From: Trichosphaerium sp. ATCC 40318
Taxonomy: Eukaryota; Protista; Tubulinea
DNA: 64,000 nucleotides
NCBI GenBank assembly: GCA_038496445.1
Contig: JALMLS010000341.1
Span: 99,663-163,662, forward strand
Direction of reading: 5' to 3'
Part shown: positions 1,107 through 31,537 of the stretch, piece by piece
Layout: the number at the start of each line of letters is the position of its first letter
Position numbering within the stretch: position 1 is the stretch's first letter
Position numbers and translations under genes: made by a program
Notes under the pieces: model-generated
Database searches by the model: none
What the model was told of the DNA's origin: nothing
What the model saw: the letters and a program-made list of their open reading frames with translations, nothing else

Positions 1107-3939
1107 TTAAACCTTGCCAGAAAATAGATTATTCATAGAAAGAGAGGAGAAAGCTAAACAAAAAATCCGTCAATAACGAATACACAAAAAACACCAAAAA
1201 AAAAAAAAAGAATCGTACGATCAGGACCAGATGGTTTTTGTACTGTATTACCAGGTGTTAAAGTAGCACCACCGTTAGGAGCCATTTGTTGTTGATTATA
1301 TCCATTGGCGTTACCATTCTGCATTTGTTGTTGCCCATACATTTGTTGACCATTAAAATTTCCATTCGCTTGTCCATTGAACTGCTGGTTCTGGGCACCG
1401 TTAAATTGCTGTTGCTGGCGTTGCTGTTGTTGATTGTAAAATTGTTGCCCTCCTTGTGCTCCAAATTGTTGTTGCTGTCCTCCAAACTGTTGAAAGCCTA
1501 CAACATAACTTTAACACAAGAGAGTTATAATTAAATCGGAAAGAGAAAGACCGCATGTATCTATTTCGTACCTTGCTGTCGTTGCTGTCCGTTAAAGTTT
1601 TGTCCATTATTCTGCTGTACAAACTGATTCCCAGCGAAACCTTGATTACCTTGAGCTTGCATATTCACATTTCTAGAAACATTTGGATTTTGCCCAAATT
1701 GATTTGCGCCAGCGAACTGCTGTTGGTTCTGCATTTGCGCATTCATAGCAGGCGTAGAATTTGCATGTCTAAACTGCTGTTGATTACCTGCAAATCCTTG
1801 ATTCATCTGTGGCTGTGGCATTGAATTCTGTCTCTGCATGTTCGTCCCTTGCTGTCCGAACTGGTTTGAAAATCCTTGAGTATTCTGACTTTGAACTCCT
1901 CCAAACATTTGGTTCTGGTTTTGCGTGAACCCTTGGTTTTGCTGCATACCATTTGGATTACCACGGGCCATATTCTGGTTACCGTTCTGCATACCAAATT
2001 GGCTATTAATGAAACCTTGATTTTGGTTAGCGACAGGTTGTCCACCAAATCCTTGGTTATTTTGTTGCATGCCATTCGCTCGAGGAGAGACCATGGACAT
2101 GTTTACGTTACTACTACTATTCTGACTACCAAACTGTTGGTTACCTGCAAATCCTTGATTCTGCATAGGCATGCCACCACCATTTTGAGTTGGAAGACCC
2201 ATACTACCATTTGAACTATGTAATCCAACGCTTGTGTTCGATCCTTGTCTTTGTATACCGGTGTTAGCGTTTACATTCTGTGTACTACCTCCAAACTGTG
2301 CAAACTGATTTTGGGCTTGTGGCGTTGCTGTCTGTTGAGAAAACGCGCCAAAACCAGAAGCTTGATTTGGTTGCATTGTTGATGCTGTTGTGACTTGGTT
2401 TTGTTGTGGTGTCATCGCTGGAGTGCCGCTCGCTGGCAACAATGTGTTACCAGACTTGCTAAACACATCTAGAGGATTTGTGCTAGGTTTCAGAGGGGAT
2501 TGTGCGACTGCAGGTCCGCCAAACGCACCAAATAGGGCTGCTTGTGAATTTCCCTGCTGTGGCTGAGCTGGAGTTTGTCCAAATTGTCCAAAAGCTTGTT
2601 GTTGCGCTCCATTTGTCTGAGGTGTAGCAGCAGGAGCCCGCATATCAAAGCCATCAAGAAGAGAAGGCGTTGCTGCAGGTGCTGCTTGTGCTGCTGCTGG
2701 TGGTTGATTGAATGCAGCAAACCCACCTTGGCCTGGTGCAGCACCGAAAGGATCCCAACCGCCTAAAACAACGTCAGCTAAAGAACTTGAATTTTTTTCA
2801 AATAAAAACAAACTATTTTCTTGCCTTGTTGTTGTTGTGCGGCTGCTGGAGCTGTAACTGGAGCACCAAAAGGGTCTCCAAATGTGTTTGACGCTTGAAT
2901 CGCTGTTGGAGCGGCTGTAGATGACCTAGCTTTCTACAATGAGTTAGTACAAAAAAAAGAAAAAATATTTTTTCCGGTTTTTGATTTTTTTTTCTGAAAT
3001 TGATGTAAAAAAAAAACGACGTTGCATTTAATTAATAGTGGCGAACATACATCGACGAGCTGTATTTCGGGGATATTGTTACCAAGGAGATTTGAAAGCG
3101 GCTCAGGAGTTGGAGTCTAGTGGCCACAAATAAGAAGATTTGGTTTTGGGTGCGTTTACTGTTTTTATAATAAAAAGCTAAGAGGTATATCGGTAGATAG
3201 GTGCATAAGCCATTCCGGCTTTTACGTCACTTGGCGTGCCTTTATCTTTTTGCTTTTTCTCTTTTTCTTTGTTCGTTTCTTTTTTTTTTTAACTGTGGCT
3301 ACCCACTGCTTTTCTACGTATGTTTTCAGTATGAACTCTTTAATTTTAGCTCTGTCATCGGGTCCTGGCTTTGGAAAAGACTGTGGTGTCCAACTAGCCC
3401 TCCATTTAGCTATGGCAACCTAATAAAACGGTTACAAGGCGACTACGACGCAAATAAGTCACCTCATTGCCACCTTCACAAATAGCATCAACCTCGGCGT
3501 CAGTGAATGTTGTGTGATGTATAGATTTGACGCGAATGGAGCTAGTTGGAGCGTATGGAATTTCGCGCCTTTGAGTGTCAGAATAAGCAGTTAATGGCGT
3601 TGTCATCGTACATTACGCCACTACATAGTGTGCACAGTACGGTGTTGAAGGTTGTACAAATATAAGTGCAACTCTGTAGGTGTGTTAGTTAAATAGATAA
3701 GCGGGTAAATAATGGTATGGGTACCCTTGCGGTGCAATCCATACACTCTTTATTGGCTACAGGTAATTAGCAAGTGATCTATCAAAGAGGAGCAGATAGT
3801 TTCGGTTCTGCGTTAAAACGATAGCGCAAGCGATTGTAATAACGCTGTGCTAACGGCGTATCAAACGCGTACCTGGTTCACGCAATTTGGTTCGGACCCT
3901 GTCCATATTAATTTTCTCCTTTGAGGCGAACCTACTCAT
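1107..3939 (-). CDS. ArfGAP-domain protein (AGFG/Hrb-like) with a long Q/N/G- and FG-rich low-complexity tail; multi-exon
   Basis: Spliced N-terminus ...REPANKECMDCTAR SCTYICTTFNTVLCTLCSGV..RVKSIHHTTFTDAEVDAICEGGNE (CxxC-x16-CxxC ArfGAP zinc finger), followed by DPFG/FGQ-rich exons. Confidence 0.85.
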
Positions 3940-4119: not shown

Positions 4120-5832
4120 TTAATTTAGATGAGGTAGACCATCATCTTCGTCCACTTCTGACATTTCATCATAATCTTGTTCATCTAGTTCCTCTAAATC
4201 ACTCTCATCATCAAGAGAGTCATCGTCCGAGTCCAAGTTAACCTCTTGCCAAGGCTCTGCGGATTTACTCATAAATCGTGTTGAAAATCGTTTTGACAAA
4301 TCCCGTATTGACGCAGTGATGGCTAAACGCCCCTCTTTCTTCTGTGGAGGAGCTAGTGCTGCTACACGATTGTTCTTTGGCGCTGGGCCATCTGGAAACT
4401 TAGGCTCTCCCAGAGCTCTAAGATCTACTTTTGGTTCAGAGACTTCAGAACTTAATTCAGAAAGCTCTAAGCCGCTATCAGACGAGTCAGAGTCAATTTC
4501 TGATAGTAATTCAGAATCATCTGACTGATTTTTTAATACTGCTGGTTGTGTGTATTTTGTGTGTTTATCGCCGCGATGTACACGACTTTTGGTTTTCCTC
4601 ATTGCAATGAAACATATGCCAAAACCTAAACGGAGAGGTTATGTAAAAGTGAATCAATTATATTGAGTGTGACTTACTGACAATGTTAAGCACAAGCAAA
4701 CCAGCAAGTATTATACCAATGATTATACCAAGAGGTAGTGCGAATCCAAAATGATGGCTAGGCGCACGCTGAACTGCCTCCGCTCTAGTAGGTGGACTTT
4801 GTGTTATAGGTACACTTTGTGCACTTTGCGTTGGTGCAACGGGAGGAGGTGAGGTTGTAGGTTGGGCACTGGAACATGAGTTAAAAATACAGGAACTAAA
4901 GAAACAATTTGCTTACGTTGGCGCTAGAGTATCTGTCAACTTGTTGGAGCCATCACACTTTTATCTGCTTTAGTAATACACTTTTGACATCTATACGTAC
5001 TCTAGTAACGGTATGGAAGGAGAAAAATGATTCTGTAGGGCAAGCGTCGAAGAAAAATGGTTCTGTTTTACCCAGAATACATTTACCAGTTGTTTCACAA
5101 TACCCACAAATTTGGTTCAATGGGTTGTCTGTCAATGTAACACATTTATCGCAATCTTGTTCTGGTACTTGTACTGCACATGGGTCATCTTCTGTGACTA
5201 TAAGCCATTGATCGAAATCATTATCATTACAAGGTAACCATTTCAAAGTAAAGTCAGAAAACGCCAAGCACTCATTATTTGTATGAGTGCGTAAATGAAA
5301 CGCTTCGGAGCAATTGAAACCGTTATTAGAAGCAATTGTATCATTGCAAGGTGTCTCTACGAGCTCGAAATCGTAGTCTAAAGCTGAGTGACACTGTGTT
5401 AGGTGTTCCCCATCTACTCCTGAGGAATGTACACATAAATTGAAATTTAAGTAATTTCGCCATTGGAACCATTCATCATCAGCTGACGAGTATGCAAACG
5501 ACCAATATGCGCTGTAGCTTGGTGAGAAGTACTGACTAAAAAAATAAAAAACGCATGAACTTCCTACCTTGGGTTTGTTGTCCCATCAAAGAGGAATTTC
5601 AACGCTAGAGCCTATACGTTTGTAAGTTGGCGTGTTATTTTCGTAGACGTGTTTAGCCGCGTGAGCAACCGTTGTAGTGTTATTTGGCGCGCGTTGGAGC
5701 ATTTTAACGTACGTTATCGGGGTCTACACCAAGCGCATATTCTTGATTACCAGCAGCTTGCAGAGTCCATAAATGGGCACTCAGTACAACTAGTGGTAGC
5801 ACTAAAAACAAAAAAGCGACGGTTCTTGCCAT
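4120..5832 (-). CDS. Type I membrane protein: signal peptide, Cys-rich/PSI-like ectodomain, Pro/Thr stalk, TM helix, acidic cytoplasmic tail
   Basis: MARTVAFLFLVLPLVVLSAH signal peptide; CDKCV...CGYCETTGKC PSI-like motif; hydrophobic LPLGIIIGIILAGLLVLNIV; D/E/S-rich last exon. Confidence 0.65.
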
Positions 5833-5975
5833 GCACTCTTGAGTTGATTACCAAAAGTAAAGTACAATCGCAATATGAAGCCCGCGTAGGTGCTATGGCG
5901 TCTAACGAGATCGGCAGAATTAAACGGCTTAACAGTGCCTTACCAGAAATTCTGTACTTTTTTTATATACAAGCA

Positions 5976-7444
5976 ATGGACAAGGAGAACGTAAATATAA
6001 TGAATGCGCACCAAACCAGTACGTTTGTTTGAGTGAAATTGAGTTTGTAACTCTTATACGTTACAGATTCACCATCACACGCGAAAAAACGACAACGAGC
6101 GAGTGATACTTCGGTTGATGCAATAGAAGCAGGCCTTAAAAAATTAAAAAGCATCGATCAACCAGATACGCCAGCCACACTAGGTAGGACCATTTAGTAG
6201 CTTTGATCTAACATTCTATTACAGAGGATGAAGTAATTTTACGCGGGAGACTACAAAAACAAATAGAGTTCTACTTTAGTGATTCTAACTACTTGGCATC
6301 TACATACATGCGTTCAATCTCCGACGCAAACGAAGGCTGTACGTAAATTTTATTTAAAGTGTCATTTATTTCCAGCCTTTCAAATGATTTATTGCTATTA
6401 GGGTTCCCTATCGCAGAACTATTCAAGTTTAATCGCGTGAAAACCATTGTTAGTGCAATCGAAAGTGAGACGCCAGAAGCGTTTATATTGTCTTCAATAA
6501 CAGGCTCCCAGACACTAGTCGTTTCAGAAGATAATAAAAGTATAAAACGAGTCTCAGCTATCTCACCTGATGCTCTTGAAGAGTCCAAAACCAGAAAAGT
6601 GTTCATGGTACATTCTTTGTAGCTGTCAAAATGGTCCTTACGTAACAATCTATTAGAGCGGCTTTCCAGTCTCTGACTTGAACGTTGAAACTGTAACTGA
6701 CTTTTTTATGGCCCACGGCAAAGTATTGTCCGTAAGGATCGTTAAACCAAGAAAAGAACAAAAGGTACTCTCATTGTATGATTTAATTTCTGACTTTTTT
6801 GTTTTGTAAGACTGGCTCAGCACTGATTGAATTCTCGTCCCAAACTGGAGCAAATGCTATTGTGGCTAAGAATCAATTAGTATACGCACAACGCCATGCT
6901 TTGACTATAAAACCATACCGTGACGACGCGGCCAAAACAGAATATCGTAATAGACATGTCCGTAAACAAGCACAGCAAAAAGTACGTCGCCAAGACGCCA
7001 TAGCTGAGCATGCTTCTATACACGCATATTGTGGTAGTTGTGAAACAAGACTTTGCTCTTCGGTTTCACTAAGGTAAGTGATAACCATGCTCGGTGTTAT
7101 CGCCTTACTTTTGCTGTAGACTACTACCAGATAACTCTATTATTTGTTGGCAAGTAGATCTATTAAAACCGTCAATAATTCTCAAGCCTCATCCGGATGC
7201 CGAAAAGAACCCTAAGAAAGTATATCATATCAAGTGTGCAAAATGTGCTTCTCCGCTGGGTATGGTGTCCAAGTATAAGAGTACAAGCTTGTCATGGTTT
7301 TTGAAGGGAGCTAGAATACAGTTCAAACGTAAGGAGGGACATAAGGAGGAGCAAGACATTTCTGTAGCTGAATGGAAAGAATTCCAAAAATCAAGAAACC
7401 AAAAAAGAGTTGAGAAGCTCAATCTAAAGAGTACCAAACAATAG
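5976..7444 (+). CDS. La-module protein (La motif + RRM) with a C-terminal RIG-I-like receptor CTD-type zinc domain
   Basis: LQKQIEFYFSDSNY...EGWFPIAELFKFNRVK...LVVSEDNKSIKR (La motif); RKVFMSGFP...VLSVRIVK..TGSALIEF (RRM); CGSC...KPHP...KCAKCASPLGMVSKYK (RLR CTD-like). GT-AG splicing keeps the frame. Confidence 0.85.
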
Positions 7445-7691
7445 GGTTCTTAAGCCACGGCGCATTGAATATGTGTTGACAATAGATAACGTACTTGTTG
7501 TTGTCAGTCGCCGTTAAATGGCAATATTCATTGTAATCATTGTACTAATAAAAATCAGCTGTTTACGCTGAAAATATTCAACAAAAAGAGATGTTGAGAA
7601 GTCAATGCTGGTAGACTTGAACCGCAAATTCACGAAACAAGAATATAACGGCGTTAGGTGTCATTGATTGTCATTTGTTTTAAGGTTTGGC

Positions 7692-14502: not shown

Positions 14503-17500
14503 ATGTCTGGCGGGCAAATTTATTACCAGGTGCGTTGGACGCGGGCAATGCGAAAGTTAAATAGAAATATTATGTAGTTATTTAAAACCCAATCAACCGC
14601 TAGCAATTCCAGCTCACGCTTTTTTAGTTTCAAGCGAGCTCCAAAGAACAAAATGCCCTAGCGTTCGAAGGACCTATTATTTCCTTAGCTGAATTAAAGC
14701 AAGGTATTGTACATCAACAAAAATTAGGGAGCGCACGCGATTTTGGTCTGGAAATTGTAAATTCGCAAACAAAAGAAGGTACGCACCTAACCAGTACTTT
14801 ATATGCCAGATACGCCTTACATTTGAGCTAAATGGATGAGATCCGGTTTATTTGTGCACTCTTAGCCACTGTTAACGTTTTTTTAGTTTACAAGGATGAC
14901 GCCATACTTATACCGCGTAACACATCTGTTGTTGTTAGACGAATTCCAATTACTGCCGCGAGAGGTGTCGCTCCTCCTCCGGCTCCATTTTCTCGCCCAA
15001 CTAGCTACCAATCCCACACGTACACTAGTGTACCGAAATATGACGCATCGAAGTCCTCTTCAAAAGTCACTGGCGGCGCAAGCAGTGAAGAACAAGAAGG
15101 CATTGACAAGTTACTAAACCAAAAACCAACCTGGACGTACGTGTACCATAGCATTATTGGCGTAGCTATGAAGAAAGGAACAAAGATAATCATTTGCGCT
15201 CTGCGCGTAGTTGAAAATAAAATCTCATCTATTTTTCCTCTCCCTATCACAATTATCCCTCCTTTTCTTTTTTTGACGGTATTGCTGAGTAGATCGAAAA
15301 AAAAAAAAGAGCCAAATAATTGAAGATCTTTATAATCATACACACTAACGCAACAGCGCAGAGTTTATCTTGCCCTTTTCTATGCTTTATTCTACCCTTT
15401 ATTTCTTTTTTTTTTTTTCTTTTCTCGCTTTTATTTAAATGTTTCTAGGCGAAGAGCGTCTGGTGGTAATGTTAGGAGAAAGTGTGAAGGTCCACCACCT
15501 CCTGGCTATGTTTGTCATCGTTGTAACCAACCGAATCATTGGATTCAACATTGTCCAACGAATGGTGACCCTCAGTATGACTTGCCTAAGATTAAAAAAG
15601 CTACTGGTATACCAAGAAGCTTCTTAAAGCCTATAATTGGTGGTGATCATAAATCAGCCTATGTAGTGCCTGGTGGCGGCTTAGCCAAGATGGCGCCGAA
15701 TGAGTACATTATTTTTTTTCAGAATTTTCTGATTTTTGTTTTCTCACGAAAGTCGACTAACACACAATGTAGACATGTTTTTGAACAAGAAATTGCTAAG
15801 GCTAACCCAGTAGATGAAACTAAAGAAGGTGAAGAAGTACCAAAGTCTTTTCAATGCCCTATTTGCAAGGTACGCTCAAAACCAAACTGACTTGATTTTT
15901 TGGAGTGGAATTCTAACTTTTTTGGTTTTAGGATTTATTAAAAGACGCTGTACTTATATCTTGTTGTGGATACAGTTTTTGTGATGAGTGTACGTACCTT
16001 TATAGCTTATGTAACGCTCCAAAACGCTAACTTTGATGTTTTTAGGTATTCGTCCTCAAGATCTTAGTCAAGTCCTCCTTTGTCCTATGTGCAAGAAAAC
16101 AACTACTGCTAATAAGCTTGTACCAAACCACAGTATGCGTACATCTATAACGGAGTACATCAAAAATAAGGAAGACGAGAAAAAAGAAAAGGAAAAAGCT
16201 GAAAGGGAGCGTCAAGCGCAAATCCAAGAGGCTGTGCGTTTAGAACAAGAAAAAGCAGCTCTGGAAGCAGCCAGGATCGTACAGGAGCAGAGAGAAGCTG
16301 AAGAAGAGCAAAAACGCAAAGAAGCAGAAAAAGCAAAGGAAGAAGCCGAAGAAAGGAAGGCAACCAAAGATACTTCCGATAAGGGTACAGAACTGAAGGC
16401 CCATGAATCACCTAGAGACGTAGAGGAAGGAGAAGGTGAAGAAAAGGACCCCAAGTCGATTGATGATGCGTCTAAAGATGATAAATCCGATGAAGATAGC
16501 AAAGATAAAAAATCATCAAAACGGCCTTCATCACCTGATTCAGAGGGCTCTCGTGATAGCAGCAAGAGTAAAAGATCTAGCCGTGGTATTTTTGAACCTC
16601 TACCGGATATGCATATCCCTGATTTTATTAAAGGTACGCAAGCTTTAAGATCATATTTTTTTTTTACGTGGTTCAATTGATGTGCTTACAACGTTTTATA
16701 GAGAAGCAACATGGTAAAGATAGACGTGGTGATCGTCATTCAAGACATCGTAGTCCTCCAAGGAGACATGATTACCCTGGACAAGGCTATGGTTACGCTT
16801 ACCCTCCAGCGCCTTATGGTGTTCCACCGTTTTATCATCCACCGTTTCCTGGTTATTACCCACCACCATATGGCGTACCACCTTACGCACCTGGACCTCA
16901 TCGTGGTAGAGATTATGGCCGCAGAGATAGCTACCGAGATGGTCATAGAAGACGCTATAACAGTCGAAGCAGGGAGCGCCGACATAGAAGCAGAGAAAGG
17001 TTAGTTTTTTTTTTTTGTTTTGTTTTCAAGTTTTGTGCTCATTGATTTTTTATAGAAGAAGTAATCATTCAAGAGATAAAAAAAGGCGTAGTCGTAGGTC
17101 TAGAGACAAATCTCCAAAAGATAGCACCAAGAGCACCTCCCATCGTGATGAAAAAAAGGATTCTGATAAGCGTACTCCTGAACAAGAAGTTAAAACACCA
17201 ACGAGCCCAATGCTTGCAGATAAGAGCCCAGACAGCGTAGATTATAGTCCAAGTCGTGCTCTAGATGTAGATTTTGATGATGCGGAAGGAAATGAAGTTG
17301 AAGAGAAGAAAGATGTATCACCTGTTGCATCTTCTCCGAAGACACCTACAGAGCCTGCAGACCCTGAAGAGGAAGTAATGAAGGTGGAACCAAAAGAGAG
17401 GGAGCATAACACGAAGAAGAGAAGCCGTGATGAGGATGACAGTCGTAATGATAGAGATAAGAAGCGTTTGAGGAGTAGTGATGATAGATCTCGTCGAGAT

Positions 17501-17800
17501 AAGCGCAGACGTCGAGATGACCGAGATCGTAGAGATAAGGATCGTAGGCGCGAGCGTGATAGCAAGCAATCGTCTTCTTCCTCTTCTCATAGACGAGAGA
17601 GGGATAAAACAAGGCGCCGTGGTTCAGAAGATAGACGTGATGATAGGGATCGTCAGCGTTCATCCTCAAGGCGTAGCTATTCTCCTGGGCATGGGCATAA
17701 GCGTAAGCATGAGCGTGAAAGTGAGAGTGCTAGCAAGAGGCGTAGACATCGCAGTGATAAAAGCGATAGAGCTCGTGACCATAGGAAGTCTTCAAGGTGA
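14503..17800 (+). CDS. RBBP6: RBBP6/Mpe1-like E3 ligase / 3'-end processing factor (DWNN, zinc knuckle, RING, RS-rich tail)
   Basis: DWNN YKDDAILIPRNTSVVVRRIP; knuckle PPPGYVCHRCNQPNHWIQHCPTNGD; IKKATGIPRSFL; RING CPICK..LLKDAV..CCGYSFCDEC..CPMC; R/S/D-rich C-terminus. Confidence 0.92.
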
Positions 17801-19512: not shown

Positions 19513-21780
19513 TTATTTTGTTGTAATTGATACAACCTCACTACTGGATCCTTTGGGTATTATTCTATAATGAAACAAGTACAAACATACTAGAATAACT
19601 GTCCATACAGCATTAAGCGCAAGCAACACTATACCCTACTTTTGAGGTTAAAATGTGTGCTAGAACTGAAAAGTACATACCATGTACAAAGCTACAAAAG
19701 GCATAAGTGCAGTACCGCTAGCTACTATCCAACATAAAAGTATTACAGCATAGACTAAGAAAGCACAAGATGAGATAAAGAAGAGGGTAAACAAACAAGT
19801 TGACTACTTGCCTACGCCAAGCCAGAAGCACGTGTTACCAAGTCGCCAAGGAGTGAACAATTGAATGATAGATATTGATGCTAGTATTAATGCCCATACT
19901 CCAGCAGGGACCAGTAGACCATAGATCCATGCTTTTAACAAATTTGTAAGAATTTTATAGGATTTTAAAGGTTGTACTAGGGAATGCTTCAATGTCACAT
20001 GAAGCGTCGTTTCCTGGTTGTCCTCTGAAAAAACAAACTTATTGAGTTCAAACTTTTGCTTAGATTACAGTACGTTTTTACAAATGGAGCACATCCTGAC
20101 CATTGTATAATAGGGTTAGCGTCTTCTCCTCTGTATCCTTTCATATTAACACATAAAGGGCCTGTACCGGAATCTTCAATCTCTAACACACCATATTGAT
20201 TGACGTAGTGATACTCATAACTTTTACAACCTGTTCCAAAAAAAGTCGTAAATTACAAGATGCTTTTGTTTGATGCAAAACATTAATACCTTCAGAGAAA
20301 GGACCTCCTTTGGACGATCCAATGCGATCATATGCTGCAGCTTGGAATATTGGAAACCCTTAAAAACGTGTTAAAAAGTACTGGTGTTGACAGTGAGTCA
20401 AACCTGCTCCGCCACCAGTGGCATAGTCCGAGTTTGAGCCTATTGCTATTAAAACAATAAACATTTATTTATGTCTCACCATCGTCAATTGCAAGCATGT
20501 GAGAATCACCAGATATAGCAATAAGATTTGTTACGCTACAATTCTTTATCATATTAGCAACTCTTGTTCTATCACTTGGATAACTAAACCATTTATCACC
20601 CTGCTGTCGAGTTAGATACTCGAGTGCAGGTTGTGCGTGTGAGGTAGTCAAAGTGACTCACCGCAGATGGTTTTCCTATCCATGGAATAGTATTTGCCCA
20701 GACCACCAGAGAATATGAAGAAGCTGAACACAATTCATTGTTGAACCATTGAAACTGCTCTTCACTCATGAGCGTAACTTCCGAAACTTGCTGCACAAGA
20801 AATGAACAAAACTCGGTAAGTAGTTTCCGCTAATTTTTATCGAAACTATTTTATTACCTCTGATTTTAAATCTGTTATTATAAATCTAACGTTACCAATA
20901 GTATATGCTTGGTTTATTCTTGCTTGAAGATCAGGAGCTAACAAAACATGTGTTAGTCTTTGCATTGGCAACAAAAAAGACTTACGGGCGAGTTCTGTGG
21001 GATAATGTGGAAAGTACATTCTATACGCTGACCTAGCTGCTGGTTTACTAGGCGAGCTTGAGTCAGCATTATTTGGTCCATAATCGTGGTCATCCCAAAT
21101 ATAGCTCATAGGAAGACTTTGGAATAATTCACGTTGTCTGTTTTGTTTAAAGGTAAGTTCATAAGCATCACGGAAAGCTTGAATGCTGTTTGTGGTTATA
21201 TCTGTATAATGTAGGTCACCCAAATGGATCATCAAATCAGCATTTTGATTCTTAATGGCCGAGAAAACTTCTAAACAGAAAAAATTATTTGTTTTTTGAA
21301 AACGACATGGCACGTGATTTTTTCTTTTCAGAAACTGTGTCGTACTGTTGTTTGAAGCAGCGCTAGAGCAAGATCCAAAAACAATCTTTAAATTTTGAGG
21401 ACCTTCACTAAAAGTTGAAAAAGTCCCGACTCTAGCGGTACTTGCGCCATAATAGTACCGTGAGGACGATGTTAAGTTGTGAAATGTAATCTTAAAAGGA
21501 TCGCTTGTTATCGCCGGTGCCCGTATTGGAGAAGTTAGATCCCTTGTTGAACTCAACGATAGTGTCCCTCCTTGATTACCTAACCGGTAATTTGGTAAAC
21601 AGTCAAGAAATTGGCTACAGCACAACAAGCGAAGAGGATTGGCGTACCTGAAATCACTATTGTCGCTTGGCTGTTTGTAACTCCTCCTGCCCACATGATA
21701 AAAGGAGAAACATAGCTAAATAGGCACGTGATAATAAAGAATGTAATATACATAGTGGTGTAGTGAATGAAGTATCGCAT
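19513..21780 (-). CDS. PhoD-like alkaline phosphatase/phosphodiesterase with signal peptide and C-terminal TM helices (copy 1)
   Basis: FGSCS, IHLGDLHY, IWDDHDYGPNNAD, ISGDSHMLAIDDG motifs. Confidence 0.88.
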
Positions 21781-23591: not shown

Positions 23592-24122
23592 TTAAGTTGG
23601 TACGCTTAATACAGTTTACCACCCTATAGCAAAAACTACTCGTTGTCAAATAATAAAAAGTTTATTCGTTTTTAGCGAAAATACAGTCACGCATTCTGCG
23701 CCAGGCACCATAGTAAAATGCAAAATGGCCTTCGCAATATCCTCGGTGCTCGCACTTTCTGCGCGAATTATTAACGTAATTCGGCTCTAACACAATATGA
23801 TCTGGGTTCGTGCATGCCTTACAATGGCACAAATGCGAGGCGTCAACCTCGCAACGCTTTAGCGTTGGATAATACAAATAATACCCTAGTTCATCACGGT
23901 CACGCAGAGTGATGCCTTTTTGCGTGTATAACACGTAATGAGCTAGATTGAATTTCATATTTTTACATCCGTTCTGGAATGTTGCATAGATATAACCTGA
24001 ATGATTTATAGAGCCTCTCTTACACACACGGCATCCAGTTTCTGTTGTTTTAAGTTAGTTTTGGTGTGTTTTGTTGTTAAGTTGGTACGCTTAATACAGT
24101 TTCCCAACCTATAGCAAAAACT
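23592..24122. repeat. 46 bp direct repeats bracketing the nuclease coding exon
   Basis: TTAAGTTGGTACGCTTAATACAGTTT(A/C)CCA(C/A)CCTATAGCAAAAACT at 23592-23637 and 24077-24122; partial copies at ~23352-23380 and ~23570-23595. Confidence 0.92.
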
Positions 24123-29968: not shown

Positions 29969-30345
29969 GGGGTTGTACAAGTGAACAAAGTAAAATTTAA
30001 ATAAAATCATTTCAAAAAAAAATATTGTTTGCCTTGATACTACCTTACTTTTTACCTCAAGGATGTGTGGGTGCTAACAACGATCCCGTTAAAAACTCTC
30101 TTATCTGTAGAGACGGCTATAAATCTATTGCACGCGTTGTAGCGCTTCAACAGATTTCGCTGTTCTTTACATTGTTTTGTTGCTTAGTATGAATATGAAC
30201 GCACTTAGAAATCGATAACATCTAAACCATCGAACTAAAAACCACAGTAGCAATTGCAAACAACACTGCATGTTTGTTGTGAAAAAGGGAGAAATTGAAC
30301 TTTCCTGTTTCGGTTGAACGAACTGCCTTTTTGTTCATTTTCACA

Positions 30346-31537
30346 ATGGCAACACAGCAAAAGCACAACACTCAGTACGGCATCACACCAACAAATTAAC
30401 CTCATTTACGCTAGTGATACTAAACAGAACTGGTTTAAAGCTCTACCAGTTGAAATAATAGCACAAATACTAAAACAATGTCCAAAAGCGCCTAATGTTA
30501 CAGGCGCATGTCATTTATTGCGAAACGTCTTTCAAGAGCATGTTGGGTACTCCGGTTATCGTCTTCCCTGTTACACACGCCATTGCACGACATTTTATGA
30601 TAGTAGGATACTACAAAGTGCACAAATAGTAGTATTTGATGGCGTTAGAGATGAAGCCATTAAACTCCTTCGAAATGTTAGGTCTATATCATTCGGTGAA
30701 AGATCACGTGTTACAAATGACGGCTATAAGTATCTTGCAGGTGTTCACACAATAAACCTTAGACATAATAAGAGTATAAGAGATGATGGTATACGCTCTT
30801 TAGCAGGTGTACATACAATTGATCTTAAGAAAACATGTGTTACTGACTATGGTGTAAAAGCTCTTTCTGGTGTTCATAATATTAATCTTAGCGAAACTGA
30901 AGTTACAGATGTTGGCATTAAAGCTCTATCTGGTGTTCACACAATAGACTTATCGGAAACTAAGGTTACAGATGAAGGTATTAAAGCACTTACAGGAGTA
31001 AATACAATATTCTTACGGCGATGTCGTTACATAACTGATGAAGGTATAAAATCTCTTGCGGGTGCCACAAAGGTTTTTTTAACCTATGTGCGTGGGATAA
31101 CAGATAAAGGTATACAAGCACTGGCTGGCGCTAAAGTCGTGGATCTAAGCCACGCTAATGTGTCTGACAAAGGTCTGAAAGCGCTAGCAGGAGTACAAAC
31201 AATAGGTCTTCGAAATGCCCAGAGAATTACAGATGAAGGTATCAAAGCATTAGCAGGAGTTAAAGTTATAGATCTAGCTCTCACTAACGTAACTGATAAA
31301 GGTGTTAAGGCACTATGTGGAGTTCACCAAATTGGGCTATGGCGTACTAATGTGACAGATGAAGGCATAAAAAAACTGAGTGGTGTGCAGACTTTGTCGA
31401 TTGCTCAAACTTTAGTAACAATTGAAGGCTTACGACCACATGTCAATACCCTAAAGAAACTTCAAATAGGCTATAAGTTTGGTGATGTTGGTGAGCTTTC
31501 CAAAGTATTTAAAAACACAACAATTCTTCGCCAATGA
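30346..31537 (+). CDS. F-box + leucine-rich-repeat protein
   Basis: Short first exon MATQQKHNT, one intron, then WFKALPVEIIAQIL and about 12 repeats of GVHTIDLSxTxVTDEGIKAL. Confidence 0.85.

Follow-up and report, generated by a model that had tools for sequence, protein, structure and literature searches.

[quoted passage not shown] The initial annotation had proposed this layout from a La motif and an RRM, which both score above their Pfam cut-offs, and from an 80-residue spliced C-terminal string, which the 7073/7120 splice junction yields without any difference. La motif (LaM), RRM1 and RLR-CTD-like domain are encoded on one mRNA, and the zinc domain sits where genuine La has RRM2. The gene is real, it is expressed, and it comes from an intron-rich microbial eukaryote. 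That the zinc domain is a beta-tent zinc domain is near certain, and it probably stands closer to RLR tails than to the other beta-tent families. Our preferred reading, held with roughly even confidence, is that the product is a La-family RNA-binding protein with an RLR-CTD-type zinc domain, which would act as a nuclear two-point RNA chaperone. The architecture had been called unfamiliar in the initial annotation, and we likewise found no description, in the papers searched, of a La module joined to an RLR-CTD-like domain. The coordinates of the gene and its domains are given in Table 1.

Table 1. Features of the La and zinc-domain gene (window positions; residue numbers refer to the translation from the ATG at 5976).
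Feature	Position	Strand	Details
Coding region	5976..7444	+	7 exons, 391 aa; start ATG 5976, stop TAG 7442-7444
Exons	5976-6018, 6067-6183, 6225-6338, 6402-6607, 6657-6764, 6811-7073, 7120-7444	+	
KKRQR basic patch, residues 21-25	6084..6098	+	Low-complexity N-terminal region; translation
La motif, residues 64-110	6254..6457	+	Interrupted by intron 6339-6401; Pfam La, 52.4 bits (cut-off 37.1)
RRM1, residues 159-217	6602..6873	+	Interrupted by introns 6608-6656 and 6765-6810; Pfam RRM_1, 27.1 bits (cut-off 20.7)
Basic linker, residues 218-268	6874..7026	+	pI ~11, measured for residues 236-265
RLR-CTD-like zinc domain, residues 269-375	7027..7393	+	Interrupted by intron 7074-7119; Pfam RIG-I_C-RD
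Lys/Arg-rich C-terminal tail, residues 376-391	7394..7441	+	Translation, composition
3' untranslated region	7445..7587	+	Poly(A) addition site after 7587, where a contig of run X3 passes into a stretch of A

When joined, the exons form an open frame of 1176 nt, and the six introns between them are 41-63 nt each and bounded by GT..AG throughout. Expression data consisted of near-identical short contigs from four public runs, aligned to positions 5900-7600. Spliced contigs skipped five of the six introns (6019-6066, 6184-6224, 6339-6401, 6765-6810, and 7074-7119), all with GT..AG ends, and the remaining intron, 6608-6656, had zero contig coverage; if it is retained, an in-frame stop arises at 6620-6622. 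Intron 7074-7119 was bridged by one contig of 247 nt, with 125 nt and 122 nt in the flanking exons, which connects the exon of the RRM with that of the zinc domain. This bridging contig and the poly(A) end at 7587 together show that both exons belong to a single RNA that is spliced and polyadenylated. RNA evidence over this very intron had been suggested as a check on the fusion, and the spliced contig puts the zinc domain on the La mRNA.

It is scarcely credible that the fusion stems from a faulty gene model that reads two adjacent genes, or an exon that is not translated, as one protein, and we regard that explanation as largely refuted. What speaks for it is that intron 6608-6656 lacks read support and that the transcript evidence at its largest extent is made up of separate contigs, none of which covers the full mRNA. 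However, the contig over the 7073/7120 junction reaches over 120 nt into both exons; the zinc domain is itself divided, its first Cys pair being encoded in the RRM exon and the remainder in the last exon; the frame of a transcript that retains 7074-7119 stops at 7075-7077; and the RRM_1 match crosses the one unconfirmed junction. An alternative in-frame ATG at 5895 (window 5895-5975, +) would add 27 aa with no intervening stop; since the reads begin at 5984, either ATG may serve as the start codon. G+C content of the window was 37.8%; in the published Trichosphaerium draft it is 37.69%, introns average 75 nt, and there are 7.7 exons to a gene (PMC10521059). Composition and gene structure in the window are consistent with an origin in this marine amoeba.

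Pfam scores for La and RRM_1 (Table 1) and for RIG-I_C-RD (see below) were each taken on a spliced, domain-sized piece, the three pieces being of 82, 96, and 117 aa. In single-exon runs the half La motif scored 31.4 bits, and exon 6 alone gave zero matches. With a La motif (PF05383) above the cut-off and an RRM directly after it, the protein belongs with the La and LARP proteins. Pfam detected no second RRM in the protein and no helicase core upstream of the zinc domain, LaM and RRM1 being found there instead. The KKRQR patch near the N-terminus is a possible nuclear localisation signal. In having a La motif followed by RRM1, and a basic C-terminal region, the protein resembles genuine La (human, Dictyostelium, and T. 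brucei). It differs from genuine La in that the zinc domain and a basic tail stand in place of RRM2alpha and the short basic motif, and in that RRM1 and the second La-motif half have diverged too far for either to match any PDB sequence by itself.

The best PDB matches of the La motif were the genuine La structures 2m5w (Dictyostelium) and 1s29 (T. brucei), followed by p65, LARP6, and LARP1. Searched by exon piece, exon 3 retrieved La motifs only, and exons 4 and 6 retrieved nothing. The pocket residues Q20, Y23, Y24, D33, F35, and F55 of human La read Q, F, Y, S, Y, and F in the amoeba protein, so that it departs from genuine La by Asp33 to Ser, Y23 to Phe, and F35 to Tyr. In the alignment to 2m5w and 1s29 the Asp33 position is occupied by Ser79 (6299-6301), and the spacing from Ser79 to the EGW motif, judged by eye, is presumably the same as in human La. 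Asp33 of La binds both hydroxyls, 2' and 3', of the final nucleotide (PMC2430598), and in La and LARP7 it determines the 3'-OH-dependent mode of binding (PMC7928032); the six pocket residues are conserved in all LARPs but LARP4 and some plant LARP6 (PMC7928032). With Ser79 in place of Asp33, recognition of UUU-3'OH is therefore not to be assumed for the amoeba protein.

The zinc domain, which the initial annotation had read as a RIG-I-like CTD to be examined with the Pfam profile RIG-I_C-RD (PF11648), scored 37.7 bits on it (E 2.6e-9, profile positions 4-108 of 117). This is above the cut-off of 25.6, and no other profile scored better. Yippee-Mis18 (PF03226) reached 24.6 bits (E 2.9e-5, profile positions 5-76 of 108), below its cut-off of 26.6, and HECT_2 reached 15.2 bits in Pfam. 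RIG-I_C-RD thus led Yippee-Mis18 by 13 bits on the spliced zinc domain, and exon 7 alone, which holds only one Cys pair, scored 24.3 bits versus 14.5. Genuine mammalian RIG-I tails score 128-130 bits on RIG-I_C-RD and have no Yippee-Mis18 match; with 37.7 versus ~129 bits, and with 24.6 on Yippee-Mis18, the amoeba domain is a distant or intermediate member of the family. On a local HMM built from mammalian RIG-I tails it scored 7.9 bits, compared to 0.47 +/- 2.0 for shuffles with fixed Cys positions, which control for Cys spacing and composition and of which 12 in 2000 reached 7.9.

These profile scores bear on the hypothesis that the domain is a generic beta-tent of the Yippee/Mis18 type, used for protein contact or self-association and matching RIG-I_C-RD through shared fold features. 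We consider this unlikely. It draws on the Yippee-Mis18 score, only 2 bits under the cut-off, on language-model features of exon 7, which gave low scores to Eapp_C, At4g08330, Yippee-Mis18, STEEP1, FAM72, and HECT_2 with RIG-I_C-RD absent, and on STEEP1 (E about 0.1) as the sole PDB sequence match of the zinc domain. Against it, RIG-I_C-RD is ahead past a curated cut-off and is still ahead by 10 bits when the first Cys pair is left out, and the domain is basic (pI about 9.6 from composition) and part of an RNA-binding protein. No RNA-end binders are known among Yippee/Mis18 and the other beta-tent families. Weak structure matches, the CxxC...CxxC arrangement, and near-cut-off matches in Pfam and in the language-model features suggest that Yippee/Mis18 and its beta-tent kin (YPEL, cereblon CULT, MsrB, STEEP1, and Eapp_C) have a superfamily fold in common with the amoeba domain, but they score below RIG-I_C-RD and lack the HP...K...KYK...WK pattern.

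Because no relatives were found (see below), AlphaFold was run without alignment depth, and the single-sequence model had a pLDDT of 46.9. In a Foldseek search of the PDB with this model the top four matches were the tails of RIG-I, DRH-3, DRH-1, and LGP2, and RLR tails also made up most of the top 50, PDB 6m6r (DRH-3) being among the matches. Mis18 and cereblon ranked lower, and every match had E >= 0.02 and a TM score of 0.3-0.45. VIA-align, applied to the same poor model, gave Z scores of 4.3 for DRH-1, 4.0 for Mis18-alpha, 4.0 for LGP2, 3.9 for MDA5, 3.8 for DRH-3, 3.6 for MsrB1, 3.5 for RIG-I, and 2.6 for cereblon. By this measure, and on this poor model, the RLR tails (Z 3.5-4.3) are tied with the Mis18 yippee domains (3.8-4.0), a result in favour of the generic Yippee/Mis18 hypothesis. 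The predicted model supports a beta-tent zinc fold and does not separate RLR tails from Yippee-type domains. The combination of AlphaFold and Foldseek that had been proposed for this domain returned RLR tails as top matches and a beta-tent fold, but at a pLDDT of 46.9 and with Mis18 level it left the choice between the two families where it was.

Residues were compared with database fragments of mammalian RIG-I tails, each carrying the PF11648 annotation, that had been retrieved with a 123-aa RIG-I tail bait. With hhalign the zinc domain matched the RIG-I tail alignment at E 0.0056 over 73 columns, and MAFFT extended the match to the C-terminal end. Both programs aligned the putative zinc ligands C270/C273 with C810/C813 and C323/C326 with C864/C869; the second knuckle is CxxC, versus CxxxxC in RIG-I. 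C818 of RIG-I is identical in the zinc domain, as are H847 of the HP motif (H308), K858 (K317), and G874 (G331). The KYK motif at residues 335-337 corresponds to RIG-I 878-880, with Y879 and K880 identical; at position 878 the aligned RIG-I row has Arg, Lys occurring in only some RIG-I sequences. W369/K370 correspond to W908/K909 in the MAFFT alignment. Substituted are K861 (H320), I875 (M332), and K907 (E368), and K888 is matched by R349 or K346 according to gap placement. The stacking F853 of RIG-I is lost: its loop has two residues fewer in the amoeba domain and contains no aromatic residue, the F853 position being Asn or a gap.

The residue claims in the initial annotation are borne out by these alignments. 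The His of the HP motif is kept, as is the Lys at six positions ahead of the third Cys (hhalign/MAFFT), the Lys said to be replaced by His is the one at three positions ahead of it, and the distal basic residue is present. The likeness to the RLR CTD (PF11648; RIG-I, MDA5, LGP2, and DRH-1/DRH-3) comprises an above-cut-off profile, two aligned Cys pairs, the HP motif, the retained K858, G874, KYK, and W908/K909, an overall basic character, a length of ~110 residues, and a C-terminal position. The retention of H847, K858, KYK, and W908/K909, which are RLR-specific, argues further against a generic Yippee/Mis18 domain. Set against this likeness are the absence of a DExD/H helicase, the occurrence outside animals, the score of 37.7 versus ~129 bits, the missing F853, the replacement of K861 by His and K907 by Glu, the CxxC knuckle, and the near-cut-off Yippee-Mis18 score.

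In RIG-I, H847, K858, K861, and K888 form the cleft for 5'-ppp/pp, and the stacking on the 5' base pair is provided by F853 (PMC10681732). By alignment to RIG-I, H308, K317, H320, R349/K346, and K370 are candidates for a basic cleft in the zinc domain. A domain that binds RNA duplexes or stems with no preference for 5' ends or triphosphate, in the manner of the MDA5 and LGP2 tails, and that replaces the xRRM/RRM2 of La/LARP7 as the part of a chaperone that binds structured RNA, is another hypothesis, and one that we regard as rather improbable. The missing end-stacking F853 and the His at K861 are in its favour, as are the position of the domain at RRM2 and the fit of the poor model to the DRH-1, LGP2, and MDA5 tails, which is as good as to RIG-I. 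On the other side, the identity of H847 and K858 and the basic residues at the K861 and K888 positions leave the triphosphate cleft largely intact (PMC10681732), and DRH-3, in which the residues are also not strictly conserved, still reads 5'-ppp RNA (PMC3973318).

Under the preferred reading of a two-point RNA chaperone, the La module would grip a single-stranded 3' stretch of RNA, and the CTD-like domain would grip the 5' end or a duplex terminus by means of its candidate basic cleft (H308, K317, H320, R349, and K370). In human La, the La module binds UUU-3'OH of nascent pre-tRNA, and the 5'-ppp is contacted by a short basic motif in the C-terminal part (PMC9705548). Holding of both ends is thus already known from human La, by a different C-terminal element than the amoeba zinc domain; on the simplest reading, the amoeba protein would have kept the two-point grip, with a folded RLR-type domain making the second contact. 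A clamp on 5'-ppp and 3'-UUU ends, as imagined in the initial annotation, is plausible as pure inference, given that human La already binds 5'-ppp through its basic motif (PMC9705548). From the sequence we infer that the CTD-like domain may bind zinc and RNA, that the protein may prefer 5'-ppp or 3'-UUU-OH ends, and that its location is presumably nuclear.

La modules are housekeeping RNA chaperones, and this counts against a role of the protein in defence, in which the RLR-like domain would sense viral 5'-ppp or duplex RNA in a virus-exposed amoeba and the La module would tether or shield it, the protein being one of several RNA-surveillance fusions. Such a role seems very unlikely to us. The Trichosphaerium genome does contain many giant-virus-derived genes (PMC10521059), but the Pfam matches of the 391-aa protein include neither a signalling nor an effector domain, and no relative was found in viral contigs.

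Relatives were searched for in several collections. When exon 7 was compared by phmmer with 1.84 billion representative proteins, the only matches were two bacterial repeat proteins, both spurious; a word-indexed protein search with the whole zinc domain returned zero relatives, and scans of JGI metagenomes and IMG/VR viral contigs likewise gave none. With no homologue from zinc-domain or exon queries, conservation of the La and zinc-domain fusion is not demonstrable. The 64-kb window contains neither a paralogue of the zinc domain nor any tRNA gene or Rfam family. The origin of RLRs has been placed in early animals, with none reported in fungi or choanoflagellates and none found outside animals (PMC6723221), and the RLR CTD has been called unique to RLRs (PMC8662601). 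Animals do have reversed RLRs (Hydra and Hofstenia) and helicase-less CTD proteins (sea star) (PMC8662601). These shuffled CTDs show that the domain is movable into other architectures; they differ from the amoeba protein in that all belong to animals and have death-fold or helicase domains as partners, with a La module in none.

These observations can be accommodated, tentatively and with considerable doubt on our part, by a scheme in which the RLR CTD is an older mobile RNA-end-binding module. Amoebae would have joined it to several RNA-handling cores, here La, to which it would give a dedicated 5'-end reader, and animal RLRs would be the same module grafted onto a Dicer-type helicase. If true, a helicase-free CTD in an amoebozoan RNA chaperone bears on how the animal RLR sensors were assembled. 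The protein offers a test case for two questions: whether the reading of 5' ends goes far back in the history of the beta-tent fold, and whether La proteins generally hold both ends of nascent RNAs. If the zinc domain is generic Yippee-type, what is left is a La paralogue of an unusual kind.

All six differences that contigs of other strains show in LaM, the linker, and the zinc domain are synonymous; two of them hit the codons of the zinc cysteines C270 and C326. Amino-acid changes among strains number four and were confined to the N-terminal region (A33T) and one loop (residues 359-362). This distribution, small in numbers as it is, agrees with purifying selection.

Several other features were observed in the window. 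A motif scan also hit a stretch rich in Cys (CxxC ... CxC..C) at 24033 (-), which is unrelated to the zinc domain of the La gene. Long open frames at 1561-2811 (-) and 17015-17800 (+) encode 416 and 261 aa, respectively, and have no Pfam match at E <= 1. An exon at 20846-21694 (-) matches a PhoD-like phosphatase with 31.1 bits, and a long exon at 30314-31537 (+) has leucine-rich repeats of the LRR_6 type (91.5 bits). Upstream of the La gene lies a minus-strand ORF (window 5704-5832, -) that starts at 5832 and has a signal-peptide-like hydrophobic N-terminus. The start of this ORF is ~143 bp from the La-gene ATG, which suggests a divergent gene pair with a short common promoter region.
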